A stretch of 64,000 nt of DNA from Klebsormidium nitens (taxonomy: Eukaryota > Plantae > Klebsormidiophyceae), in assembly GCA_000708835.1 (NCBI GenBank), contig DF236962.1, forward strand, positions 186,001-250,000, read 5' to 3'. Positions 7,501 through 48,431 of the stretch are shown in pieces. Both the position numbers and the translations under genes were made by a program. The notes under the pieces were generated by a model. That model was not told where the DNA came from. It ran no database searches and saw nothing but the letters and a program-made list of their open reading frames with translations. Every line of letters starts with the position of its first letter. Positions within the stretch are counted from its first letter, which is position 1.

Positions 7501-10399
7501 CTGTCCCCTGAACCCCGTCCCGTCCCCCCCCCCCTAAAGCTCTCCCTAAAACCCTCCCGAAATCCCTCCCGATAGCCCCCTGCAAACCCTTCTCTAGCCG
7601 CCACTTCCCTTCCCGCACCCGCGGCCACGTCCCGCGCCCTGCCCGCAGGATCCTCTCTTACTTCCCCCTCTCTAGTTCCCGCGGCAGACCCCTCCACGAA
7701 CCCCTCCCCGGAGATACGCCGTTCCAGCCCTTGGCGCAAGCTCCCACTGCGCGACACCTGGCGCCCTTCCATCGTCGTTCGCATATGCCGGTACTGCTCT
7801 TTCACGTGGCTAAAATCCACCCTCTCTGCCCAAGCAGATCGCTCGCCCCTGGTCGAAGAAGGGGGCCCCTCGCTCTCAACGCTCGGATCCCGGCGCAGCT
7901 TCGGACCTCTAGGGCTTGGGGGGCCGGCGTTCCCGGTCTTCCTTGAGACCGACTCAATCTCTCTTTTGAAGTCAGGATCGTCTTCGGCTTCGCTCGCTGA
8001 TGCTGCGTTAGGCCGCAGAGCGCCCCACACACCTTTTACAAAACCCCAAATGCCTGTCGCTGCAGGAAACCGTGAAACGCGTTGAGAACACTTCTCCGGC
8101 TAACCTTGGGTCAACAAAGCTCGAATGCTGCAGTAATCTACGTTGCACGCTCTGCAGCAGCAAATGTCGACAAAGATGCAAGAAGGTCATTGGACTCGAG
8201 TTGGAATCAAGCCGTTCCTCGGATCAACTTCGTTATGGTTCGCTTTGGGCGGCATTGTTTTGCAAACCCTCCCCTTTCTGCCCCTGCTCTACTTCTCCAT
8301 CCCCGAACCCTTTGGTCGGAAAAGGCTTGCCAAAACTCCTTTCGCCAAACATTGAATGTCGCTGCTCCAAAACACCCGCCTGTGCTTCCAACGGAAAACA
8401 GATAGACACCCCCTTTTGCATCGATAGACACCCCGTTTCCCTTGGTACCATGACAAAACCCTTCTACTCCTTTGACGAGGTAAACGAAGCCTCTCAGCAC
8501 CCACCTGCTTCCTCTTGGGGTTCCTCCACAATAGGTGCGGCCACAAAATGTTCTCTGGGGCTAGGCAAGGCATGCACCCGGGGAAAGCCACCGGAAGCTC
8601 CCGGAAGAAACGTGGGGGTCGAGCAGAAGCCTGAGATGGCCAGAGCATTCTCGCCTGCAACAAGCGGCATTCATTGGTCAGTTGACCAGATGGATTGGGC
8701 ACTGGCAGTGGGTAAAAGGTGAAGTTAAGCACTCTGCAACTTTCTAAAAGGGGGTTCAAGGGGGTGGATTCGTAGTCAGAACGGCTGCACACTGACGTTG
8801 ATAACTTAGATGCCTTGGAGCGATGAACTGACTTGACAACCAAGGACCGAAACTTGCCATCTTCTGGATGACTCTCCAGAAATGTGCTCAAGAGCAGGGC
8901 CCATCCCAGGTTGCGACTCCTTACGAAAGAAGCACAACGACAATCCCCCATACATCGTCCATCCACAAGCACTAAGAAAGGAAAACATTGACGAAATCTC
9001 CTCAATGCAATAGGATGACCTGCAACAATGCCTGACAGGTAAAGCGCCAATCATGGAAAAAGCGACCTCACCAGCTTTTGGAAGGAAGCGCTTGAGCTCC
9101 ACAATGGTGCAGCACGTGGCGACCATGTCCCCGCGCTCGTCCAATATCGGGGTCGCCGTAATAAGCGTCCACAATACTTCGCCATCGACACGAACGACAG
9201 GAAACTGGCCCGTCCATGCTTCTTTCTACACCAGGAAAGGAAAGTAGGGCGCCTCAGGGAACCAACGGAACCAACTGCTGATATGGGAAGAGCCGTTGAG
9301 TGAAGCTAGAGACAAGGTAAGCAAGCAAGTGGAAGTGAGAATTGTTGTAAAATTATCAAAGCCACGAAGCGCTACTTCCGAGTATGTTGAACAGAGTCTT
9401 CTGCTGCTAAGGTCCCTGTACTTACCCCTAGGCGTCTGACTTACCCTGGCCAACCGTTCTACCACTTTCGCTCCAATGTTTTTAAAGCCGGGTGCCGCCA
9501 TAACTGTGACGGCGTCCTGTCCCAGAATATGCTGACGGGACCATCCAAATAACCTCTCGCAGTACCCGTTGCTGCGCAAGAACAAGGAACTCTTTGAGTT
9601 ATGCGAGCCACTCCCTCACCTTCGCTAGGCGCTCAACCACTTTGTACCCAATGTGTTTATAGCCAGGCGCCGCCATGGTCTTGGTGCCATCAATGCCCAA
9701 GACCTCCTGGCGCTTCCAACCTAACATGCGCTCAAACTCCCTATTGCTGCAAAACCAACAGTTACAGGCCCACATATATATTTCGGGCAAACAAATGCAG
9801 AATCAGGCATGCTCTTAAGGAGCCTGTAATCTCTGCCTGTTTCCCTCAATGCCACCAGCTTGCAAAGAGTCGCCAGCTCTGCCAATGAATATATTATTGA
9901 TCCATATGAGCCCTTTATGCTTTTTCACGGGTACTGTGACACCCGTAAAAGACCAAGCTACCACTGGCTAACTCCAACCAAATGTGAAAAACAGATTCCT
10001 ACAAGTTTACGCAACTTTGACAAGCACTAAGGATGTATGACACTCATAGATCCATTAGCACACCAACGGAGATGTGTGCCGACAGTCTTCAAGCAACCCA
10101 GGCTCAGGATTCAAGCCAAGTACTGCGCTCTGCAAACAAACCTGGGAACTCATGGACAGACACGAATGAGTGCATACAAAGTTCCACTTTCAAAGCCTGA
10201 CTTCAAGCGACGTCCTGACTTCAAGCGACGTCAACAATCTTTGCAAAACTTACACATAGAGGAGGCGCCCCTGCACATCCAGGCAGTAGACCCCCTGCCC
10301 CAAATTCTCCAGAATGTCACCCCCAAATTGGGGGGGCACCCTGAATTGCCCTGAGAAGTCATTAGGCCCAGCAAGCTGGGGCTGCTGGCCGCGCATCTC
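1539..10399 (-). CDS. PAS-domain Raf-like MAPKKK (B2 group, RAF10/RAF11-like), multi-exon, 5' end not resolved
   Basis: Exons read on the minus strand: 10254-10399 ([24 protein letters not shown] start), 9620-9746 or 9445-9571, 9072-9225 ([15 protein letters not shown]...[14 protein letters not shown] end), 8505-8654, 5460-8059 (long disordered region ending [12 protein letters not shown]), 4946-5067 ([27 protein letters not shown]), 4096-4243 ([20 protein letters not shown]), 3633-3736 ([13 protein letters not shown]...IVHR), 3027-3163 ([10 protein letters not shown]...KVGDFGMSR...GTPEWMAP), 2485-2597 ([24 protein letters not shown]), 1973-2067, 1539-1632 (stop). All junctions are GT-AG with consistent phases. 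Confidence 0.93.
9445..9571 (-). other. Alternative PAS exon A (127 nt), candidate mutually exclusive exon
   Basis: ttgcgcag|C AAC GGG TAC...GCC AGG|gtaagt; encodes [42 protein letters not shown]. Confidence 0.85.
9620..9746 (-). other. Alternative PAS exon B (127 nt), candidate mutually exclusive exon
   Basis: ttttgcag|C AAT AGG GAG...GCG AAG|gtgagg; encodes [42 protein letters not shown]. Confidence 0.85.
10197..10232. repeat. Perfect 18-bp tandem duplication in a kinase intron
   Basis: ctgacttcaagcgacgtc x2. Confidence 0.9.
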
Positions 10400-12172
10400 C
10401 TGCAGAGTCATCATCCTTGTAGCTGAGTACCTGAGTTTGGAAGAGTACCGCAGTTTGGAAGGCTGACAGCCAAAGAGGACTTGTCACAGCGCACCGTCAA
10501 TGCTCCTTTAGCAAGGCAGGTGCGTGTGCACGATTGGCTTGGATTTTGCGAAAATCGCCAGCCAGTTCTGAGGGCCCAAGGGTTGCTGCCATCCCCATTG
10601 GCGATACCTTTTGGGGCTACACAGAAGCAATCGGAAATCAGGGGCTGAGAGAGTTCCTTGCCAAGGAGCCACCACATTACAAATTAGTTTCCACAATAGA
10701 GGTAGCGTGGTTTCCACTGATGCTGCACCGGCAACTGGAAATGATTAGCAACATTGTCTGCTTCAATAGCACCATCCACACAGAATGCCACCAGCTTAGA
10801 TATGATTCGCCACAATCAGATGCGAGCATCTCCATCATGTCAAAGTCAGCTGCCAAAGTTATGCAACAATAGTGAAAAACACAGGAACCTATGGGAGCGA
10901 CAAAACAACGAATGCGGGTGTTCTCAGTCTCAATCTTATTCTCATGCGTCCTGGATTCTCTCAAAGGACAACTGATCAGAACTGATCTGCCTGATGAAAT
11001 TCGTGGACGATCAGGACGGCTTGCACTTCACTGATTGGCTGGCGGCAAAAGCGGGGCGCCTTTTGCGGAATCAGAGCATTCAGTAGTGCAACTAACAGTG
11101 ACTGGAATCTGCAGCAACTACCAAATCTCAATCGCAAACAGATGCAATCATCCTCACCTGCCTCAAGACTCCCGCAATCTGACGCATATCACCATCGCAG
11201 GTTCTGCCGCCTCATATGCTGATGTCAAACAGATTCAAGTGAGCGAAGCTTTCAGAATTACTTATGGAATCCTCTAGCTACAAATGCTATGGTGGTCAAC
11301 TTGTTTGCAGAGCACTTCCCGTACGAGATGGCCACCAATTTGTAATAGCTCAGTACCAAGGCCAATGGTGAGAAGTGCTGGCGGTAGCTTTACAATATAG
11401 CTCAGCTACAAAGATTGGCAAACCTTTTGCAGTAGATGCTCAAATATGGAAGAATCCTATATATCAGCAAAAGTGGGATGCGCGTCAGCGCGCAACCAGG
11501 TTAACCGAGCTCAGCTGTTTTCAAATCTTTGATCCACCTTCTCCACAAATGAACATAAGATACGCCGGCTAAGCGTATGTGGGACCAACGCAAGCAGAAT
11601 GCTATATGTGTCTTTATGCTATCTTGACGTGCCAACTTCCAAAGACAGCTGCACAGCGCCCCTCTCCTGCCCTGCATGAGAGAGATGTTTTCCTGCTGCC
11701 ATTTGCGCCTTCCTTCCGCCAGCAGGTTCAGTCTTCCACTTCGCCATAATAGTTCAAGTTGCAAATATCAACTTGAAATCTGTCAATCAGCAGATCTGCA
11801 TGAATCGAAACGAATCGGATACGCTTTGCAGAAGATCCGCCTAGGCAGGCGCAGGCTGGCACTGTAATGGCAACGGTGACCAGGCTCCCTAGGCCGCGGT
11901 GTGCAGTGTGCGTGTGCACCTGTTCAGTGAAGAAGCACTTTTGACGCAGACAGCTTGCAGTACCGCCACTTGGCGCTATATGACAAATGTTGCCTACACG
12001 TGGCACAAAAACAGCCCAGCCTCGACTCGAGTGCTACTTCCTTTGCCGTCGATTGAATGTACGGTGTTCTCATCGCACGACTGGAAGCTTCTCATACATA
12101 CTGGCAACTCTTGCTTCCACTAAGGGGTGCTTTCACAAAGATACAGGAGCCCCGGGCACCTCAACTAGGTAA

Positions 12173-41701: not shown

Positions 41702-42499
41702 TCAGGTTTCCCCGGTGATATCTTTCCGGTCCCACGCTGCCAATCTTTCCGGCGACTCTTCCCCCTCTAGACCACGCCCTACCCACTGCCGCTCCCCCCC
41801 CCCGGAGAGAACTTCCTCCACCCAGCTTGGCGAGAAATCTTCTTCCTCAGAGTCAGCCCAGTACGTCTCGTCTGAGCCCGCCGTATTGGGGGGTCCTTCT
41901 TCCCTGGTCACGGGAACCCACCCTTCCCCACGCTCAAGGTTTGTGCTTGAGTCCCCGGGGTAACAAACGAGGTGATACGATTCAGACTCAAGGTCAAAAG
42001 AGGAGCCCAAGCTGCGTGGAGAAGTGGCCTTTTGGCTGAGCTGCTGAGGAGTGACTTTAAATTGATCGAGCCACTGCTCGAAGGAATGTTTCTTTTCTTT
42101 CAAGGGGGCCGCAAAGAGCCCTTTTCCGGAAGGAACTTGGCCGATGTCTTGGTCACGCGAACCAACACATGCAGTCAAGCGAATCTTCCTTCCTTCGCCT
42201 TCTGCCCACGTGTCAGGTCCAGATTGGACAACGTGCTCATAAGCTTGCAAGCGCAAAGAAAGCCAGCTTGGCAACGGGGATGAGATGATGACCTTTGGTC
42301 CGCAAGCAGTCGCCGGGTTGCCAGACTTGGTCCCTGCGACGGTTTCTGGCAAACCCAATAGCTGCAGAATCGTGTCATCACTAGATTTGGGAGCCCTTTT
42401 GGAGTGCCGCATGGAAGAGCGTTGACGGGGGCTCTCGCTGCTTTCCGTCTCCTCCGTTTGCTTTGCCATTCCGCTTGAGAAACAGCGCCAAAAAGGCAT
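41702..42499 (-). CDS. Hypothetical protein, probably the terminal exon of a gene extending to about 44 kb
   Basis: 265-aa open frame with an acidic C-terminus; upstream fragments with acceptor-like sites lie at 42.5-44.3 kb but could not be joined confidently. Confidence 0.35.
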   Translation of the reverse strand: MPFWRCFSSGMAKQTEETESSESPRQRSSMRHSKRAPKSSDDTILQLLGLPETVAGTKSGNPATACGPKVIISSPLPSWLSLRLQAYEHVVQSGPDTWAEGEGRKIRLTACVGSRDQDIGQVPSGKGLFAAPLKEKKHSFEQWLDQFKVTPQQLSQKATSPRSLGSSFDLESESYHLVCYPGDSSTNLERGEGWVPVTREEGPPNTAGSDETYWADSEEEDFSPSWVEEVLSGGGERQWVGRGLEGEESPERLAAWDRKDITGET

Positions 42500-45108
42500 C
42501 TCTTTTGAAAGGAACGCCTAGCTTGATCACTTCAATGTGCCTCTGACATAACGAGGAGAGCACTTGCTTGGCCTGTGGGTGGCCTTACATATCATTAAGG
42601 TGGTCCAAGCTGCAAAGATTTCGACGCGCCTCTTCCTTGCCAACGCTTCTTGCAAACGCGGCTGTCGTTACCCGTACGATATAAACGGAAAGTAAGTCCT
42701 CCTCTGCCTGCGCTTGCTCTTCTACGTGTAGAGTATCGCTGCCTAGGATGACAGAAAGGTAGGTTTGATCCTGTGAAGTCTTTCCAATCCTGCAGTCCTC
42801 CTTGCAACCACAGGCAAGGCAGCTGCAAGTTTATGGGCTTTGAGAAGTTTCCCAATCTTTCAAGCCTACGATCTGGAAGATTGGTACCAAGAAAGCCTCT
42901 TGCCTTCGATCCTAGAAAGGCAACGTATTCTAGCGGGCACTGAAAAACATCCACGCGTCGCAATCGAATGAAGTGATGCCGACGTCCGACAGTAACTGCC
43001 AGTGCTGTACTTTTACAGTTCAAAATCTGTTCAAATTCAGCGAGACAGCTGCATCAGCCCGGTTTGCTACTGTGGAACTTTAATTTATATCAGAAGCTTG
43101 AGGACGTTTAATGGCGACTGCTGCATCCGCCGTCGTTTCGATCCCCACTTGCAAGAGACAGCTGCATTCGATCAGCCCGGTTGGCTTCCTAGTATAAGGA
43201 TGACAAAGTCAAAGCTGTTCAGGGACTGAAGAAATTTAAGATGTTGCTGTGTAAACCACTGACAGTGGCAATTGAAGAGTGACTCTGGTCTGGGTGAAAG
43301 TACGGCCAGTCAACGAGAGACCAAAGCGGAAAGCAGATTCGGAACAGCGGATACTCTGGACCGTTGGATTGGTTGACGTGACAGAGCCGGTCATTGTGCC
43401 GTCATAAGGCCATCCCCCTTGCAACTTCGAAAGCAACCACGTGCACCCACTTCCGAAAGCGATGTGACCTGCGAGTAGGAAGAACGGAACGCAGTGTCTG
43501 CAACAGTTGACTCATGCTCCCTTCATCAAGGCGGCCATGTCAATATTGCAGGCTTTGTAGGAAGAGAGCCAGTCGAAGCAGAGATCTACTCTGAGGTAGG
43601 CATAGTAGAGAAAGAGACCGCTTATACCACGTTGTTTCTTGCTTCCGCGATGAACATACGCTCGACTGTTTGGACATAGTCTGCCCGAGCAGGAACTCAT
43701 AGGCTACGAATCCAAAAGAGAAATCAGAAAAGTCCTCATCAAGAACCTGGGCCGAACAGGTGCAAATGTGAGCTCGACATAACCACTTTTCCATATACAA
43801 GCAGGTTCGATATCACTAGGCGAGAGCGGCGCCAGAGCATAAAGTGCATCCACCGATCGACTTCGCCTCTCAGCTGTCTGCTCCACCAGAGAACGGTTCT
43901 GATCCGTAAGACTCTTTTCCGCTCTCCACAAAGAAATCATATGTAGGCACTTGATGCAGATTGGGGAAACCGAGTTGTGCTTCATTCCAGATGCAGCGCG
44001 AGTCTCCGCTGCAGGCAGCTCAAACTGCAGAGAAAAGTGACGTTATCATTCACTTCAGGGTCGCTTTCCCAATCTTCGCCCATAAGCGTTCTCAGTCCAG
44101 CGTTGTGCGCGAGTTTCCAGGCCGCGTAGTGGTACCGCGCGGCCGCGGCACGGGTTTAGCGATGCGGCCGCGCGTCAGGCCTTGAGCGGCCGCGGCCGCG
44201 CTCGCGGCCTGTCAAACCTCCGAGTCTGGCCCAGCGAAGTGCCGCCGCGGTGCACCTGGTCGACACGTGGCGCGTTTCGAAGCTGCGCGCGGCGCGGCTG
44301 CAAACAGTCAGCGAGGTTTAGCTTCTGGAGGAGTGACTTGAGGTTGACTTTTCAAGCTTGTCGCCGAATCTTCGTCACTTCTCATTTTGCAGATTGCAGC
44401 ACAGGCGCTTTCGTGAGGAATTTCTGACGCTCTGGTCTTGCGATTACAGGCGAAAGCTACAGCGAAGGTTTCTGCGAGAGAGTAGCGACGATCTGGACTG
44501 CTGAGAGATTCTGAGTCTGAGAGAGAAGTCCTGGAAGGAGATTTCCGAGAGAGAGGAGTTTTGAGACGCGAGAGGTTCCTCAGACGAGAGGGAGAAGCGC
44601 AAAGCACACCATTGCAGGTCTCTGCGAGAAAGCGAAACGATTCAGAGCAGGCTTGCTTTTCTGGATTTGAGGTCCACAGCGGTTGTTCAGTTATTTGAGA
44701 CAGTGACTTTGTAGACTCTTCCTTGTGTTGTTCCTTTCTATTCTCCCGCTTCGCTCTTGTGTTTTCGCCTCCTTGCTTTGCTAGTCAGACATCTTCCTTT
44801 CCATCACTAGATACTGGCACGGAGATTCTGTTCTGTTCTGCTTGTTTGTCCCACTCGGTTGATCGAAAGTGAAAGCAACAAGGGCAAGAGTAACAATACA
44901 TAACAGAAAGAACCAGTCACAAAAAGCAAAATCACCAAAAACACAAAAAAAACAGAAAACAAAGAAAAGACAAAAACAATCTCCTCTCTGCTACTTCTCA
45001 CGAAAAAACCTGTGCTCTTCCCTTTCCATTCCTGTGCTTTCTTGAGAGTACACGCCTGTTGAATGTTTCAACTTTTACACTCACCCAGAAATTTGTTCAG
45101 CACACACT

Positions 45109-46935
45109 ATGGCGTTCTCTGCTGTCTTCTCCGCCGTAGGCTCTCTCGCGTGTGCTGGCCTGTCCGCCCTTTCCCGTCCATCCTACAGGAGAAGCACTCA
45201 AGGTGCGCCTGTTGCTCTGAGATCCACTAACAGGGGCCTTGCCAGCATCCTGAGTCATCCACTTGCTGCTCGTCCCTCTGCTTTCAGGCGTCCTGTCATT
45301 TCGAGCCCTGTCAGATGTGCTCAGACGGCTTTGCTAGATCCTCTCCCGATCCCTGAGCTTGCTGTTCCTGCTCCTCTCACTGATGACGTCATCTCCCTCT
45401 CCATCTTCTCCCCTTACACAGAGTTCCAGGATACCCCCACTGCTGCACATGCTCCTGTTCAGACTGGTCCTGCCCTTGCTGACGTCACCCCTGAGTCTCT
45501 GACATCACCCCTTGACAGGGGTGCCATCCGTAGAGCGATTCTGTCCGCTGTTCCTTCCTTGCAGCGAGTCGACCTAAACACTCTGGACTCTATCGTCGAC
45601 TCCCTGCGCCTGATTTCCTTCTCCTCAGGTGACGTCATCTGCCCTAGCGAGGGCACGGGCGTCTTTGTTCTGGCTCAGGGCTCCGTCCTTAACCTCTCCG
45701 TTGAAAACCCTCTGGTTGCTGCCTCCGACTTGTATCTAAGTGCAGGACAGGGGTTTGGGGGTTTGGAGCCGTCTCGTTCTGCATTCGTCGCAGATGCTGA
45801 CGTCATGGTCCACGTCATCTCTGCAGAGGCTGTGGCGAAACTTGTACTCGCTGACATTTTTGCCTGCCCTCCCTCTGACCGTCTCTCTCTCCTCGACGAC
45901 TTGGACCTCGCAGATTTTGAGGTCGTCAGGATGCTGGGAAGGGGTTCCTTTGGTGCTGTTGCTTTGGTTAAGCACCTCCCCTCTGACCGCTTTTTCGTTC
46001 TTAAGCAGGTTATCCACCAGGACAGCCCCAACTACAGCCCCCAGAACGAGGGTCTCATGGCTGACCTCATCTCACAGACTAACCCCGTTCCCTTTGCTCC
46101 TGACACGTGTCCAGAATTCATGTCCTCTAACGCCCGCCCTTTCATCTGCCGCCACATTCAGACTTACGACCACGAGGGCACCACTTTCTTTCTCCAGGAG
46201 TTTCTTCCGGGCGGTTCTTTCTCGACTCTCCTGGACAGGATCGGTGTCCCAAGCAGCCACGTGGCGCGCGCGCGCATTTTGTCTGAGTCTGATTCCCGGT
46301 TTTATCTCGCCTGTCTCGTGCTTGCAGTGAGCCATATCCACGGCACGAGGCACATGCACCGGGACATCAAGACCGACAACTTCATGCTGGACCACCTGGG
46401 ATACGCTACCCTCATCGATAACTCTCTCGTGGTTAAGACTAACCACCGCGGCGTTGCCCGGGGATCTGCAGGGACGCTCAGCACGATGGCCCCCGAGGTC
46501 GCCAAGAGCCTGCAGTTTGGTTACTCTTTTCCAGCTGACTTCTTTTCTCTCGGCGCAGTTCTGACACGGATGATCACGGGGAGCTACCCCTACGACCACT
46601 CCGACAGGAAGCAGCTCCTGACCGCGCTCAGGGGCCCCAAACCCGTTCCAATCCCCTCTAACCTCTCCCCTGACCTGACTGACCTCATCACCCGGTTGCT
46701 TGAGAAGGACCCCGACCGCAGGATTGGCGCGGAGAGGGGCCTGCAGGAGATCCGGGACCACTCCTGGTTCCACGGCTTCGACTGGGGGGCCCTCGAGAGA
46801 AGAGAGCTGACACCCCCCTTCGTGCCGGTTATTTCCTCTCCGCAGGACTGCCAGAACCTGGGCCCGCTCGACGAGTCCCTTGAGAAGATCAAGCTGCCGA
46901 CGAGCCGTCGAGGGGCCGTTTCTGATTCTCAATGA
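45109..46935 (+). CDS. Intronless PKG-like AGC kinase with a degenerate cNMP-binding domain and a transit-peptide-like N-terminus
   Basis: Uninterrupted 608-aa ORF. The Ser/Ala/Arg-rich N-terminus ends in VRC|A. CNB-like segment ILSAVPSLQRVDLNTLDSIVDSLRLISFSSGDVI...FVLAQGSV...FGG...SRSAFVA. Kinase motifs LGRGSFGAV, VLK, HRDIKTDN, LDHLGYATLIDNS, MAPEV, and an AGC tail WFHGFDW...TPPFVPVISSPQDCQN. Confidence 0.88.
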   Translation: MAFSAVFSAVGSLACAGLSALSRPSYRRSTQGAPVALRSTNRGLASILSHPLAARPSAFRRPVISSPVRCAQTALLDPLPIPELAVPAPLTDDVISLSIFSPYTEFQDTPTAAHAPVQTGPALADVTPESLTSPLDRGAIRRAILSAVPSLQRVDLNTLDSIVDSLRLISFSSGDVICPSEGTGVFVLAQGSVLNLSVENPLVAASDLYLSAGQGFGGLEPSRSAFVADADVMVHVISAEAVAKLVLADIFACPPSDRLSLLDDLDLADFEVVRMLGRGSFGAVALVKHLPSDRFFVLKQVIHQDSPNYSPQNEGLMADLISQTNPVPFAPDTCPEFMSSNARPFICRHIQTYDHEGTTFFLQEFLPGGSFSTLLDRIGVPSSHVARARILSESDSRFYLACLVLAVSHIHGTRHMHRDIKTDNFMLDHLGYATLIDNSLVVKTNHRGVARGSAGTLSTMAPEVAKSLQFGYSFPADFFSLGAVLTRMITGSYPYDHSDRKQLLTALRGPKPVPIPSNLSPDLTDLITRLLEKDPDRRIGAERGLQEIRDHSWFHGFDWGALERRELTPPFVPVISSPQDCQNLGPLDESLEKIKLPTSRRGAVSDSQ

Positions 46936-47054
46936 CCCAGAACTTTCTGCCGAGTTGACCGACTGACAAAACGTTTTACCTGGCAGGGTGTAAAGAGAGG
47001 AGCGAAATACTCGTGACCCACCATTTGAGACGACGATCTGTCCATTGTTTTCTG

Positions 47055-47255
47055 GGACTGGTTACCGCGCATCTTCGCAGGCAGCACACTTCACAGAGGA
47101 AAAAGGAACAGTACAAAAACGTCCCACAAAAATATTTATCTATTTTCTTATTCTCTAGGACTGGTTTCGATCACCGCGCATCCCGCAGGCAGCACGTTTG
47201 ACAGAAGAAAGAGGAACAATACAAGAACGTCCAAGAAAAACATTCATCTTTTAGC
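47055..47255. repeat. Two diverged tandem copies of a ~103-bp unit downstream of the PKG-like ORF
   Basis: ggactgg...accgcgcatc...cgcaggcagcac...gaggaaca.tacaa.aacgtcc at 47055 and again at 47158. Confidence 0.75.
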
Positions 47256-48431
47256 TGTTTCCTTTCTTTCTTTTTGTGTATTCCATTTGACGTTTGCAGG
47301 TTGGAGGTACCGACTTACTCCGTGAGCCAATCAAGGAACCGCAAGTGTTTACTCTTTTTTCACAACTATCCCACGCATTCGTCTAGAAAAGCTCTTCAAA
47401 AATTGAATCGCTCAGATCGTCTTAGCAATCATGCAGTCATATGTATAGCTAGCTGCAGACTTAGATGCTGACTTGCTACATCACAGGAATACCGATAGGA
47501 ATAGGACTCCGAAATAGCTGACTAGGAATAGGAACAGCCGATCTCGCGAGGTCGACAAAATGTGCTACCTAGAAGGATAGAACACTAGGTATAGGAAATT
47601 AGAATGTAGGATAAGACCGATCAGGGACTCACTTGAGGTTATAATTTGCTATGATTTTCAGTCGATCGATGAAAAGATTGTCGAGACGAAATTTGCCGTC
47701 GCGACTCTCATATAACAAACAGCTTTGCTCGTAAGCATTCTAGCTGCCGACCGATTTCCGACTTCGTATGTCAAGCACAGAGGCCTTGCATGACTGTTTC
47801 CGAGGCGATGGCTGCATATGTTAAACGTTGTACACGGAGTCAGCTCTTGTGTGCATGTGCATGTGAGACAGTACTTTCCCGCCGTATCCGAAATCTCATA
47901 CTTAGTAGTGCATGTATCAATCGTCGACAGGCCGCGCTCTCACTTCGACGCGACGGTCACTCATCACATCTTCATGAGCAAACAATGTCGAAGTGAGCGC
48001 GCTCGTTCATGCGCGGTTGCATTCAATTCATGGCCATCCTTATCACAATCGCTGCAATCCTCGGTGCCTTTCCTTTGGAAGGCGGAGCTTGTCAAGAAAG
48101 ATGATTTAGCAATCTATCATGACCTTTGTCATGTAAACGACTTCGAGATTCGTGGTCTTTCAAATACAAGCATGCGCTGGCTTCCCGGTAGACAACTCAG
48201 AAAACTTCTAACTGCAAGACGGGCAGCTTGAAGACGGCAAGTCTAGCAACGAAGACTTCGACTTTGTCCTCATCCAACAAGAGCGACTCTAAGCTCTATC
48301 GCTCTCCCGCTCTGACGAATCGAGGCCCTGTTCGTTCGGGTGTCGTTGATTGAATCGGTTTGCCCTGTCCATAGGCGAGTCGCGAATTGCTTGTTCGCTG
48401 ATAAGAAGTTGGCTTCAATCATGCCATAAGG

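Follow-up and report, generated by a model that had tools for sequence, protein, structure and literature searches.

Kinases of the PKG type place an AGC kinase domain and its C-terminal tail behind cyclic-nucleotide-binding (CNB) domains; animal PKG I and II and the multi-CNB PKGs of algae, ciliates, diatoms and apicomplexans are all built in this way. The CNB fold can be kept while its canonical contacts are lost or repurposed, as in the non-binding third CNB domain (CNB-C) of Plasmodium PKG and the CNB-homology domains of KCNH channels. The CNB domains of trypanosomatid PKA-R have likewise switched ligand and bind nucleosides (PMC10959531). In the green lineage, the PP2C-type PKG family (rice OsPKG, Arabidopsis At2g20050) joins CNB domains and a kinase to a PP2C phosphatase domain, and is single-copy and widespread (PMC8728061). 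The charophyte green alga Klebsormidium nitens has a homologue of this PP2C-type PKG, GAQ83023.1, together with candidate phosphodiesterases (PMC8728061). An adenylyl-cyclase-like gene of the algal class III is also present, but CAPE is absent (PMC5159850). The present analysis concerns another CNB-kinase fusion of K. nitens, encoded at positions 231109-232935 (+) of scaffold DF236962.1 within a 64,000-nt stretch (the window; features in Table 1). No paper mentioning its public model GAQ78450 or the paralogue GAQ78430 was found in the literature, and searches on Klebsormidium PKG or PKA, or on a plastid PKG, turned up general context only.

On balance, and with rather better than even confidence, the evidence points to an expressed single-exon nuclear gene for a lineage-specific, strongly diverged PKG-type kinase of K. 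nitens. The gene is a divergent variant of the CNB plus AGC kinase family common in algae, and no new kind of system. The original prediction had treated a PKG as a surprise by reference to flowering-plant genomes; this surprise disappears, since the host, identified by a word-index protein search, is a green alga, and proteins fusing CNB domains to a kinase occur commonly among algae and protists. The same search returned the public model GAQ78450.1 ("serine/threonine protein kinase", 535 aa; 100% identity across 83% of the 608-aa open reading frame), the K. nitens paralogue GAQ78430.1 ("putative cGMP-dependent serine/threonin protein kinase", 544 aa; 80% identical), unrelated kinases, and nothing else.

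Architecture, fold and embeddings together indicate a PKG-type protein. The kinase has PDB sequence matches at 1e-33 to 4e-41, to PKG I, PKC-theta, PKA and the N-terminal kinase of RSK2. Alignments of the PKG, PKA and RSK chains run through the PPFxP tail, and those of PKG I cover aa 144-589, including the region upstream of the kinase. Both elements expected of the type, an AGC catalytic domain with its C-terminal tail and a CNB domain directly N-terminal to it on the same chain, are present. For aa 105-608, AlphaFold2 (AF2) modelling from 52 sequences gave pLDDT 80 and pTM 0.70; the best Foldseek matches of this model are human PKG I in its regulatory-catalytic complex (7lv3), CNB-B of PKG with the catalytic domain (7t4t/u/v), and Plasmodium PKG. 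These two-domain matches span 450-497 columns, and the kinase part reaches TM 0.81-0.88 (normalised to target length) against the catalytic domains of PKG I-alpha and RSK2. A second model, of the CNB domain alone (aa 128-268; pLDDT 80), finds PKG I CNB-B (4ku8) as its first Foldseek match, and its best 50 matches are all CNB domains (TM 0.52-0.69). Each of the ten nearest ESM-Atlas clusters listed is a protein-kinase cluster, cNMP_binding accompanies the kinase in nine (scores 0.95-0.98), and several are chlorophyte. As judged from alignment and modelling, the architecture is of PKG type, with one predicted CNB-fold domain fused N-terminally to an AGC kinase; the earlier call of a PKG-like protein is borne out by the agreement of sequence, fold and embedding evidence.

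The divergence of the protein is equally evident. When 1.84 billion cluster representatives were searched exhaustively with HMMER, the protein's own cluster scored 1165 bits and the next best match 195 bits (28-40% identity), and no relative above ~40% identity appeared among the representatives. The named matches form a mixed set, comprising arthropod RSK and PKC, vertebrate and Ciona PKG, PKG-like proteins of Pyramimonas, Thalassiosira, Rhodelphis, Colponema, Palpitomonas and Syssomonas, and CNB-less AGC kinases of Mesostigma and Closterium. CNB domains occur in 33 of the 149 hits, usually two to four each, and the CNB-bearing hits align colinearly over aa ~131-590. Identity to any PKG is only 25-35%, there is no recognisable leucine zipper, and the N-terminal 135 residues, presequence-like and then linker, are a further difference from PKG. 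In contrast to the PP2C-type plant PKG, likewise a streptophyte protein joining CNB domains and a kinase, the Klebsormidium protein has no PP2C domain in Pfam and no orthologue outside Klebsormidium in the HMMER search. Peptide-pattern scans of JGI metagenomes and IMG/VR gave no confirmed relative, and as such scans require exact 8-mers this is weak evidence of absence.

Some observations pull the other way. Both structure models were built on PKG-type alignments, which favours those folds. In a free tree of 130 kinase domains, moreover, the Klebsormidium pair is not placed within the CNB-kinase clade; it sits without clear position among long branches, on a stem of 2.09 changes per site. When a 72-row set was analysed under LG+G4, the union of the pair with the 31 CNB-bearing rows was not rejected (p-AU 0.90) and scored above a quick free tree. 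On sequence, the kinase-domain data neither show nor reject membership of the PKG clade. RSK and S6K kinases give the top scores for the kinase domain alone (RSK2 PDB 3g51, 4.1e-41; library hits P0058 and P0059), but they have no CNB domain and carry a canonical DFG, a T-loop Ser and a hydrophobic motif; where the tree groups them with the pair, it brings long branches together without support. Of the check on relatives and phylogeny proposed at the outset, the search half gave no relative above ~40% identity among the representatives, while the tree half leaves the pair without a firm place. The sequence hallmarks cited for PKG/PKA membership (LDHxGYAxLxD, RFYxAC and TPPxxPxxxSPxD) are, by consensus, general to AGC kinases.

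The CNB domain occupies the kinase-proximal CNB position of PKG-type proteins, with which it aligns column by column. Its N-terminal helices and beta-barrel align well (ILSAVPSLQRVDLNTLDSIV...FSSGDVICPSE..GVFVLAQGSV), and a profile built from 18 PKG-type CNB domains, with the Klebsormidium rows excluded, matches both paralogues at 26-28 bits. Pfam cNMP_binding is undetected in the whole protein at E<=1 and in the CNB part at E<=10, and Pkinase (2.9e-35) is the only Pfam family found in the whole protein. The difference from relatives is concentrated in the phosphate-binding cassette (PBC). Where these read FGE-RALL-xxx-R[ST]A, the Klebsormidium protein reads FGG-L-EPS-RSA: F216-G217-G218 replaces FGE, a gap of 4-5 residues falls at the PBC helix, and R223-S224-A225 is retained. 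The model shows only a tight turn here, with no helix between the two strands, and the intact pattern FGE-helix-R[ST]A is absent. Each Klebsormidium protein has a single CNB match, as opposed to two to four in most of the 33 CNB-bearing hits; a tandem of two or more CNB domains is not found, and only 59 linker residues lie upstream of the CNB. The single degenerate domain, with its short cassette, FGG for FGE and conserved RSA, is accordingly confirmed by alignment in the form first described.

The truncated PBC makes canonical binding of cyclic phosphate and ribose unlikely, and the CNB domain has probably lost the canonical mode of cAMP or cGMP binding. If so, the domain would serve as a structural or autoinhibitory module, or as a binder of another ligand. 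The degenerate CNB domains of PKA-R, Plasmodium CNB-C and KCNH channels similarly keep the fold; in contrast to them, the Klebsormidium domain lacks the whole PBC helix, as opposed to carrying single substitutions.

The kinase domain retains most of the residues required for phosphotransfer. GRGSFG, VLK299, HRDIKTDN (417-424, with catalytic D419 within H417-R-D419), K421, N424, D437, APE (461-463), D477 and R538 are all kept, and K299, D419 and D437 are present in both paralogues. Two positions are unusual. The DFG motif is replaced by Asp-Asn-Ser (DNS), whereas among the 128 nearest kinase domains DFG occurs in 117 and DNS in none. In the activation loop, G452-S-A-G-T stands for [ST]xCGT, placing Gly452 at the phospho-acceptor column, with S453 adjacent; this column is Ser or Thr in nearly all relatives. 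The glycine-rich loop, the VLK lysine, HRDIKTDN, APE, DNS and the GSAGT loop had been read correctly from the sequence at first sight. In addition, an insert of ~11-15 residues follows helix C (aa ~322-341), modelled with low confidence.

To judge from the retained ATP-anchoring Lys, catalytic Asp, Lys and Asn, and Mg-binding Asp, the kinase probably remains active. The absence of a phospho-acceptor at the PDK1 position, the absence of a hydrophobic motif and the Asn at the regulatory-spine Phe site suggest that it is probably regulated non-canonically. The reading at odds with this is a catalytically dead scaffold, a pseudokinase despite its catalytic triad. DNS would remove both the regulatory-spine Phe and the hinge Gly, and it is joined by Gly452, the missing hydrophobic motif and the very long stem of the pair. 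Which residue corresponds to the helix-C Glu differs between alignments (E314, D319 or Q323) and is uncertain; combined with DNS, this tempers the view of the kinase as active. Set against a dead scaffold are the retention of K299, D419, K421, N424, D437, APE, D477 and R538 in both paralogues under a Ka/Ks of 0.18, and the existence of active kinases without a canonical DFG, haspin among them. A pseudokinase is usually called where the VAIK Lys, the HRD Asp or the DFG Asp has been lost, and it is not indicated here, as all three residues are in place. A catalytically dead scaffold is quite unlikely.

The C-terminus carries the conserved sequence LExIKLPTSRRGA[V/I]SDS, with RRGAV at aa 600-604 and RRGAIS in the paralogue, which resembles the inhibitor site of PKA RI. 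The chance of RRxA[VILMF] is 0.004 in the last 30 residues and 0.07 anywhere in the protein.

The structure of the gene is established by transcripts. In transcript assemblies from three independent studies, a single contig each covers the locus, colinear with the genome and without a joint across window positions 44000-48000: one of 3316 nt (44408-47723), one of 3299 nt (44398-47670), whose 5' end directly abuts an Illumina adapter, and one of 3201 nt (44427-47627). Coverage is essentially nil beyond the contig ends, depths reach 237, and the kinase stretch is present in 19 runs from five studies. The assembly sizes of 28-39 Mb, the coincident ends and the silent flanks fit transcripts and not genomic DNA. 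Since the contigs from all three studies are colinear and free of joints, we conclude that the main kinase mRNA is unspliced, with a 5' untranslated region (UTR) of ~711 nt, a coding sequence (CDS) of 1827 nt and a 3' UTR of ~700-790 nt. The gene had been called intronless, with expression proposed as a check; the contigs answer both points.

The alternative is that the public 535-aa model is right, and that the main product lacks aa 32-104 and with them any long presequence. The proposed 219-nt intron is in frame, has canonical GT..AG ends and carries a strong polypyrimidine tract; furthermore, the run type "RNA" is a guess, and contigs drop rare variants, so that a minor spliced isoform is possible. 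These caveats temper the unspliced reading. The three transcript contigs nevertheless retain the segment, at depths of up to 237. In both paralogues the region is open, its indels are multiples of three, and its Ka/Ks is 0.42. The model of the paralogue, meanwhile, removes a different in-frame segment, aa 10-77, and such a disagreement between the two models is typical of ab initio prediction. The intron of the 535-aa model is unsupported, its segment wrongly spliced out, and we give that model a very small chance of describing the main product. The N-terminus of GAQ78430.1 is probably mis-annotated in the same way.

In one further run, X3, a 7625-nt contig meets the stretch by two pieces only, at 44186-44209 and 45469-45486 (24 and 18 nt). 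Being otherwise unlike the sequence, it probably reflects chance or low-complexity similarity and is no transcript of the kinase locus.

The 711-nt leader contains one ATG against 11.9 expected from shuffles (P=0.0002), whereas its reverse complement contains five and the 3' UTR seven in 765 nt. This depletion, combined with the good context of the main ATG at 45109 (A at -3, G at +4), supports the start codon named originally. Within this frame of 608 codons no start lies further upstream, and no second Met occurs before residue 233; the N-terminal extension therefore belongs to the protein, and no downstream start would retain the CNB domain. The sole ATG of the leader, in a weak context (T at -3, T at +4), opens an upstream open reading frame (uORF) at 45063, which may act as a translational control element.

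The N-terminus itself has the composition of an import signal. As the original prediction described, it is rich in Ser, Ala and Arg, acid-free and ends in V-R-C/A; this composition extends over 76 residues (16 S/T, 14 A, 9 R/K, 6 P, 0 D/E), an acid-free run with a chance of ~7e-5 given 11.8% D+E in the remaining protein. The features sought in a transit peptide, 40-80 residues rich in S/T/A, basic and acid-free, with an [VI]-x-[AC]/A site, are all found, the site being V68-R69-C70/A71 in the kinase and the aligned I-T-S/A in the paralogue. The acid-free 70-residue N-terminus, partly deleted in the public model, is most likely a cleavable organellar presequence, with the balance tipping slightly towards an organelle. 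Composition of this kind does not separate plastid from mitochondrial presequences. Plastid targeting specifically falls somewhat short of an even chance.

The fuller proposal made at the outset, that a PKG derivative has been redirected to the plastid stroma and acts there as a sensor of cyclic nucleotides or as a pseudokinase, gains from the same features: the acid-free stretch, the MA start, the paired cleavage-like sites, and an extension that is coding, lies within the mRNA and could not be bypassed by a later start that keeps the CNB domain. The composition does not set a plastid apart from a mitochondrion, the truncated PBC speaks against cyclic-nucleotide sensing, and the residues whose loss would define a pseudokinase are retained. 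As a whole, the proposal is rather unlikely. A variant with the organelle kept and the sensing changed is speculative and has a low probability. In it, a PKG-derived kinase imported into the plastid (or mitochondrion) would use its CNB domain, now without the cyclic-phosphate cassette, to sense either a different metabolite of the organelle or a ligand within its own chain, and an unusual mode of phosphotransfer, independent of the activation loop, would be supported by the DNS loop.

A difficulty for a presequence lies in the first residues. The segment aa 1-33 is the best conserved part of the first 135 residues (82% identity to the paralogue) and holds the highest 19-residue hydropathy of the protein (KD 1.73, helical moment 0.88), which is unusually conserved and hydrophobic for a transit peptide. 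Ka/Ks is 0.14 over aa 1-31 and 0.23 over aa 1-76. This invites the alternative that the N-terminus, instead of targeting the protein, has a regulatory role in a kinase that is cytosolic or associated with membranes. Residues 2-22 would form an amphipathic or hydrophobic helix for dimerisation or membrane association, followed by a substrate-like RRx[T] site (RRST at aa 27-30, RRAT in the paralogue), in the position of the docking and inhibitor elements of PKG and PKA-R. The C-terminal RRGA[V/I]S, within the last 10 residues, may then be a pseudosubstrate, RRGAI being the inhibitor site of PKA RI-alpha. Both motifs were found post hoc, however, and the RRxT site has Gln at P+1, which is poor for PKA or PKG; a membrane span is unlikely for a 21-residue segment with five Ser and two Gly, and 76 acid-free residues are more typical of presequences. 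A regulatory N-terminus is unlikely, and the organellar presequence is preferred.

The paralogue indicates that these unusual features are maintained. It lies ~152 kb from the kinase gene on the same scaffold, at DF236962.1 76758-78599 (-), equivalent to 10001-11842 of locus L001, as one open frame of 613 codons. DNS, the truncated PBC, the Gly452-type loop and the traits of the C-terminal tail are identical in it, and the Ka/Ks of the pair is 0.18 in the kinase and 0.19 in the CNB domain. That both copies share these traits at low Ka/Ks points to a functional design under constraint, as opposed to decay. The paralogue is probably expressed as well, as one contig of 163 nt shows 13 differences and a 3-nt insertion at 46656 that matches the paralogue's extra codon.

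The origin of the pair can be judged from its surroundings. Both copies are single-exon amid intron-rich neighbours (for example, 226 aa over 3.4 kb and 303 aa over 2.7 kb). This contrast, and the long branch, would suit a retrocopy of an intron-bearing PKG gene or a horizontal acquisition, from a protist or giant virus for instance, as first proposed. The place of an expected parent or donor is empty: the HMMER, JGI metagenome and IMG/VR searches returned neither an intron-bearing parent nor a foreign source, and the best foreign hit, at 195 bits and 28-40% identity, belongs to a taxonomically mixed set (animal RSK, PKC and PKG, diatom, prasinophyte, Mesostigma). No genomic poly(A) remnant was found in the sequence after the 3' UTR. 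Of the marks of a processed retrogene, the gene is intronless, but neither an intron-bearing parent nor a poly(A) remnant was found. The search for relatives within the genome did yield a paralogue, itself intronless and 80% identical.

The upstream neighbour indicates instead how the pair arose. A 265-aa open reading frame at window positions 41702-42499 (-), without any Pfam family, lies head-to-head with the kinase gene at a distance of ~2.6 kb. Its homologue at L001 6183-6974 (-) occupies the matching place upstream of the paralogue, with 32% identity over 250 aa, a 92-nt DNA match and the common motifs IISSPLPSWLS and ERQW. This duplicated, divergent neighbour implies that the kinase pair arose by segmental DNA duplication of at least 5.2 kb; judged by the aligned sequences, the neighbour gene has diverged much faster than the kinase since the joint duplication. 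With the duplication DNA-based, retroposition or horizontal acquisition retains only a small chance as the source of the gene. A single ancient retroposition before the duplication is possible.

Two other scenarios for the origin were considered and set aside. Double retroposition is rejected, as the copies share the duplicated neighbour gene and no poly(A) remnant is present. Recent horizontal transfer is unsupported, with no foreign relative above ~40% identity among the representatives searched.

In the 3' UTR, two direct copies of ~95 nt were spotted by eye at 47040-47135 and 47150-47245 (+), following the pattern ctggtt..ccgcgcatc..gcaggcagcac..acaga.gaa..aggaaca.tacaa.aacgtcc..aaaa. They were not reported by the tandem-repeat search at its thresholds.

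Table 1. Coordinates of features at the kinase locus, in window positions
Feature	Position	Strand	Remarks
5' UTR, ~711 nt	44398..45108	+	contig starts at 44398/44408/44427 in three studies
A-rich imperfect tandem repeat	44928-44979	+	AAAAACACA-like units, within the 5' UTR of the kinase mRNA
uORF, 55 codons, frame +2	45063..45230	+	sole ATG of the leader; overlaps the main start out of frame
Coding sequence	45109..46935	+	608 codons plus stop, single exon
Presequence-like N-terminus, aa 1-70	45109..45318	+	S/A/R-rich, without D/E, ends V-R-C/A
In-frame 219-nt "intron" of GAQ78450.1	45203..45421	+	GT..AG, good polypyrimidine tract; retained and coding in assembled transcripts
Linker, aa 71-135	45319..45513	+	proline- and acid-rich; poorly conserved (46% identity to paralogue), low model confidence
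CNB-fold domain, degenerate, aa 136-262	45514..45894	+	Foldseek, PKG-type CNB profile, alignment
PBC remnant, aa 216-227	45754..45789	+	FGGLEPSRSAFV; Glu to Gly, helix deleted, Arg-Ser-Ala kept
AGC-type kinase domain, aa 270-554	45916..46770	+	Pfam Pkinase 2.9e-35; PDB hits RSK2, PKG I, PKA
D-N-S in place of D-F-G, aa 437-439	46417..46425	+	identical in paralogue
AGC C-terminal tail, aa 555-608	46771..46932	+	PPFVPV..SPQD; no FxxF hydrophobic motif
3' UTR, ~700-790 nt	46936..47700	+	contig ends at 47627/47670/47723

With the gene so far confined to one genus, and CNB plus AGC kinases common in algae and protists, its general importance is limited. A practical consequence concerns annotation: 69-73 codons that are present in the transcripts are missing from the public models GAQ78450.1 and GAQ78430.1. 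As the deleted codons are the part that suggests organelle targeting, localisation predictions for the K. nitens proteome miss this kinase pair. For the family, the pair represents a natural experiment, in which a CNB fold without its PBC helix is combined with an AGC kinase carrying Asp-Asn-Ser, both under purifying selection. If the presequence is genuine, a PKG-type kinase would reside in an organelle of an alga closely related to land plants, a setting in which cyclic-nucleotide signalling is poorly understood. If import into the plastid were true, this would be the first AGC/PKG-type kinase within a primary plastid.

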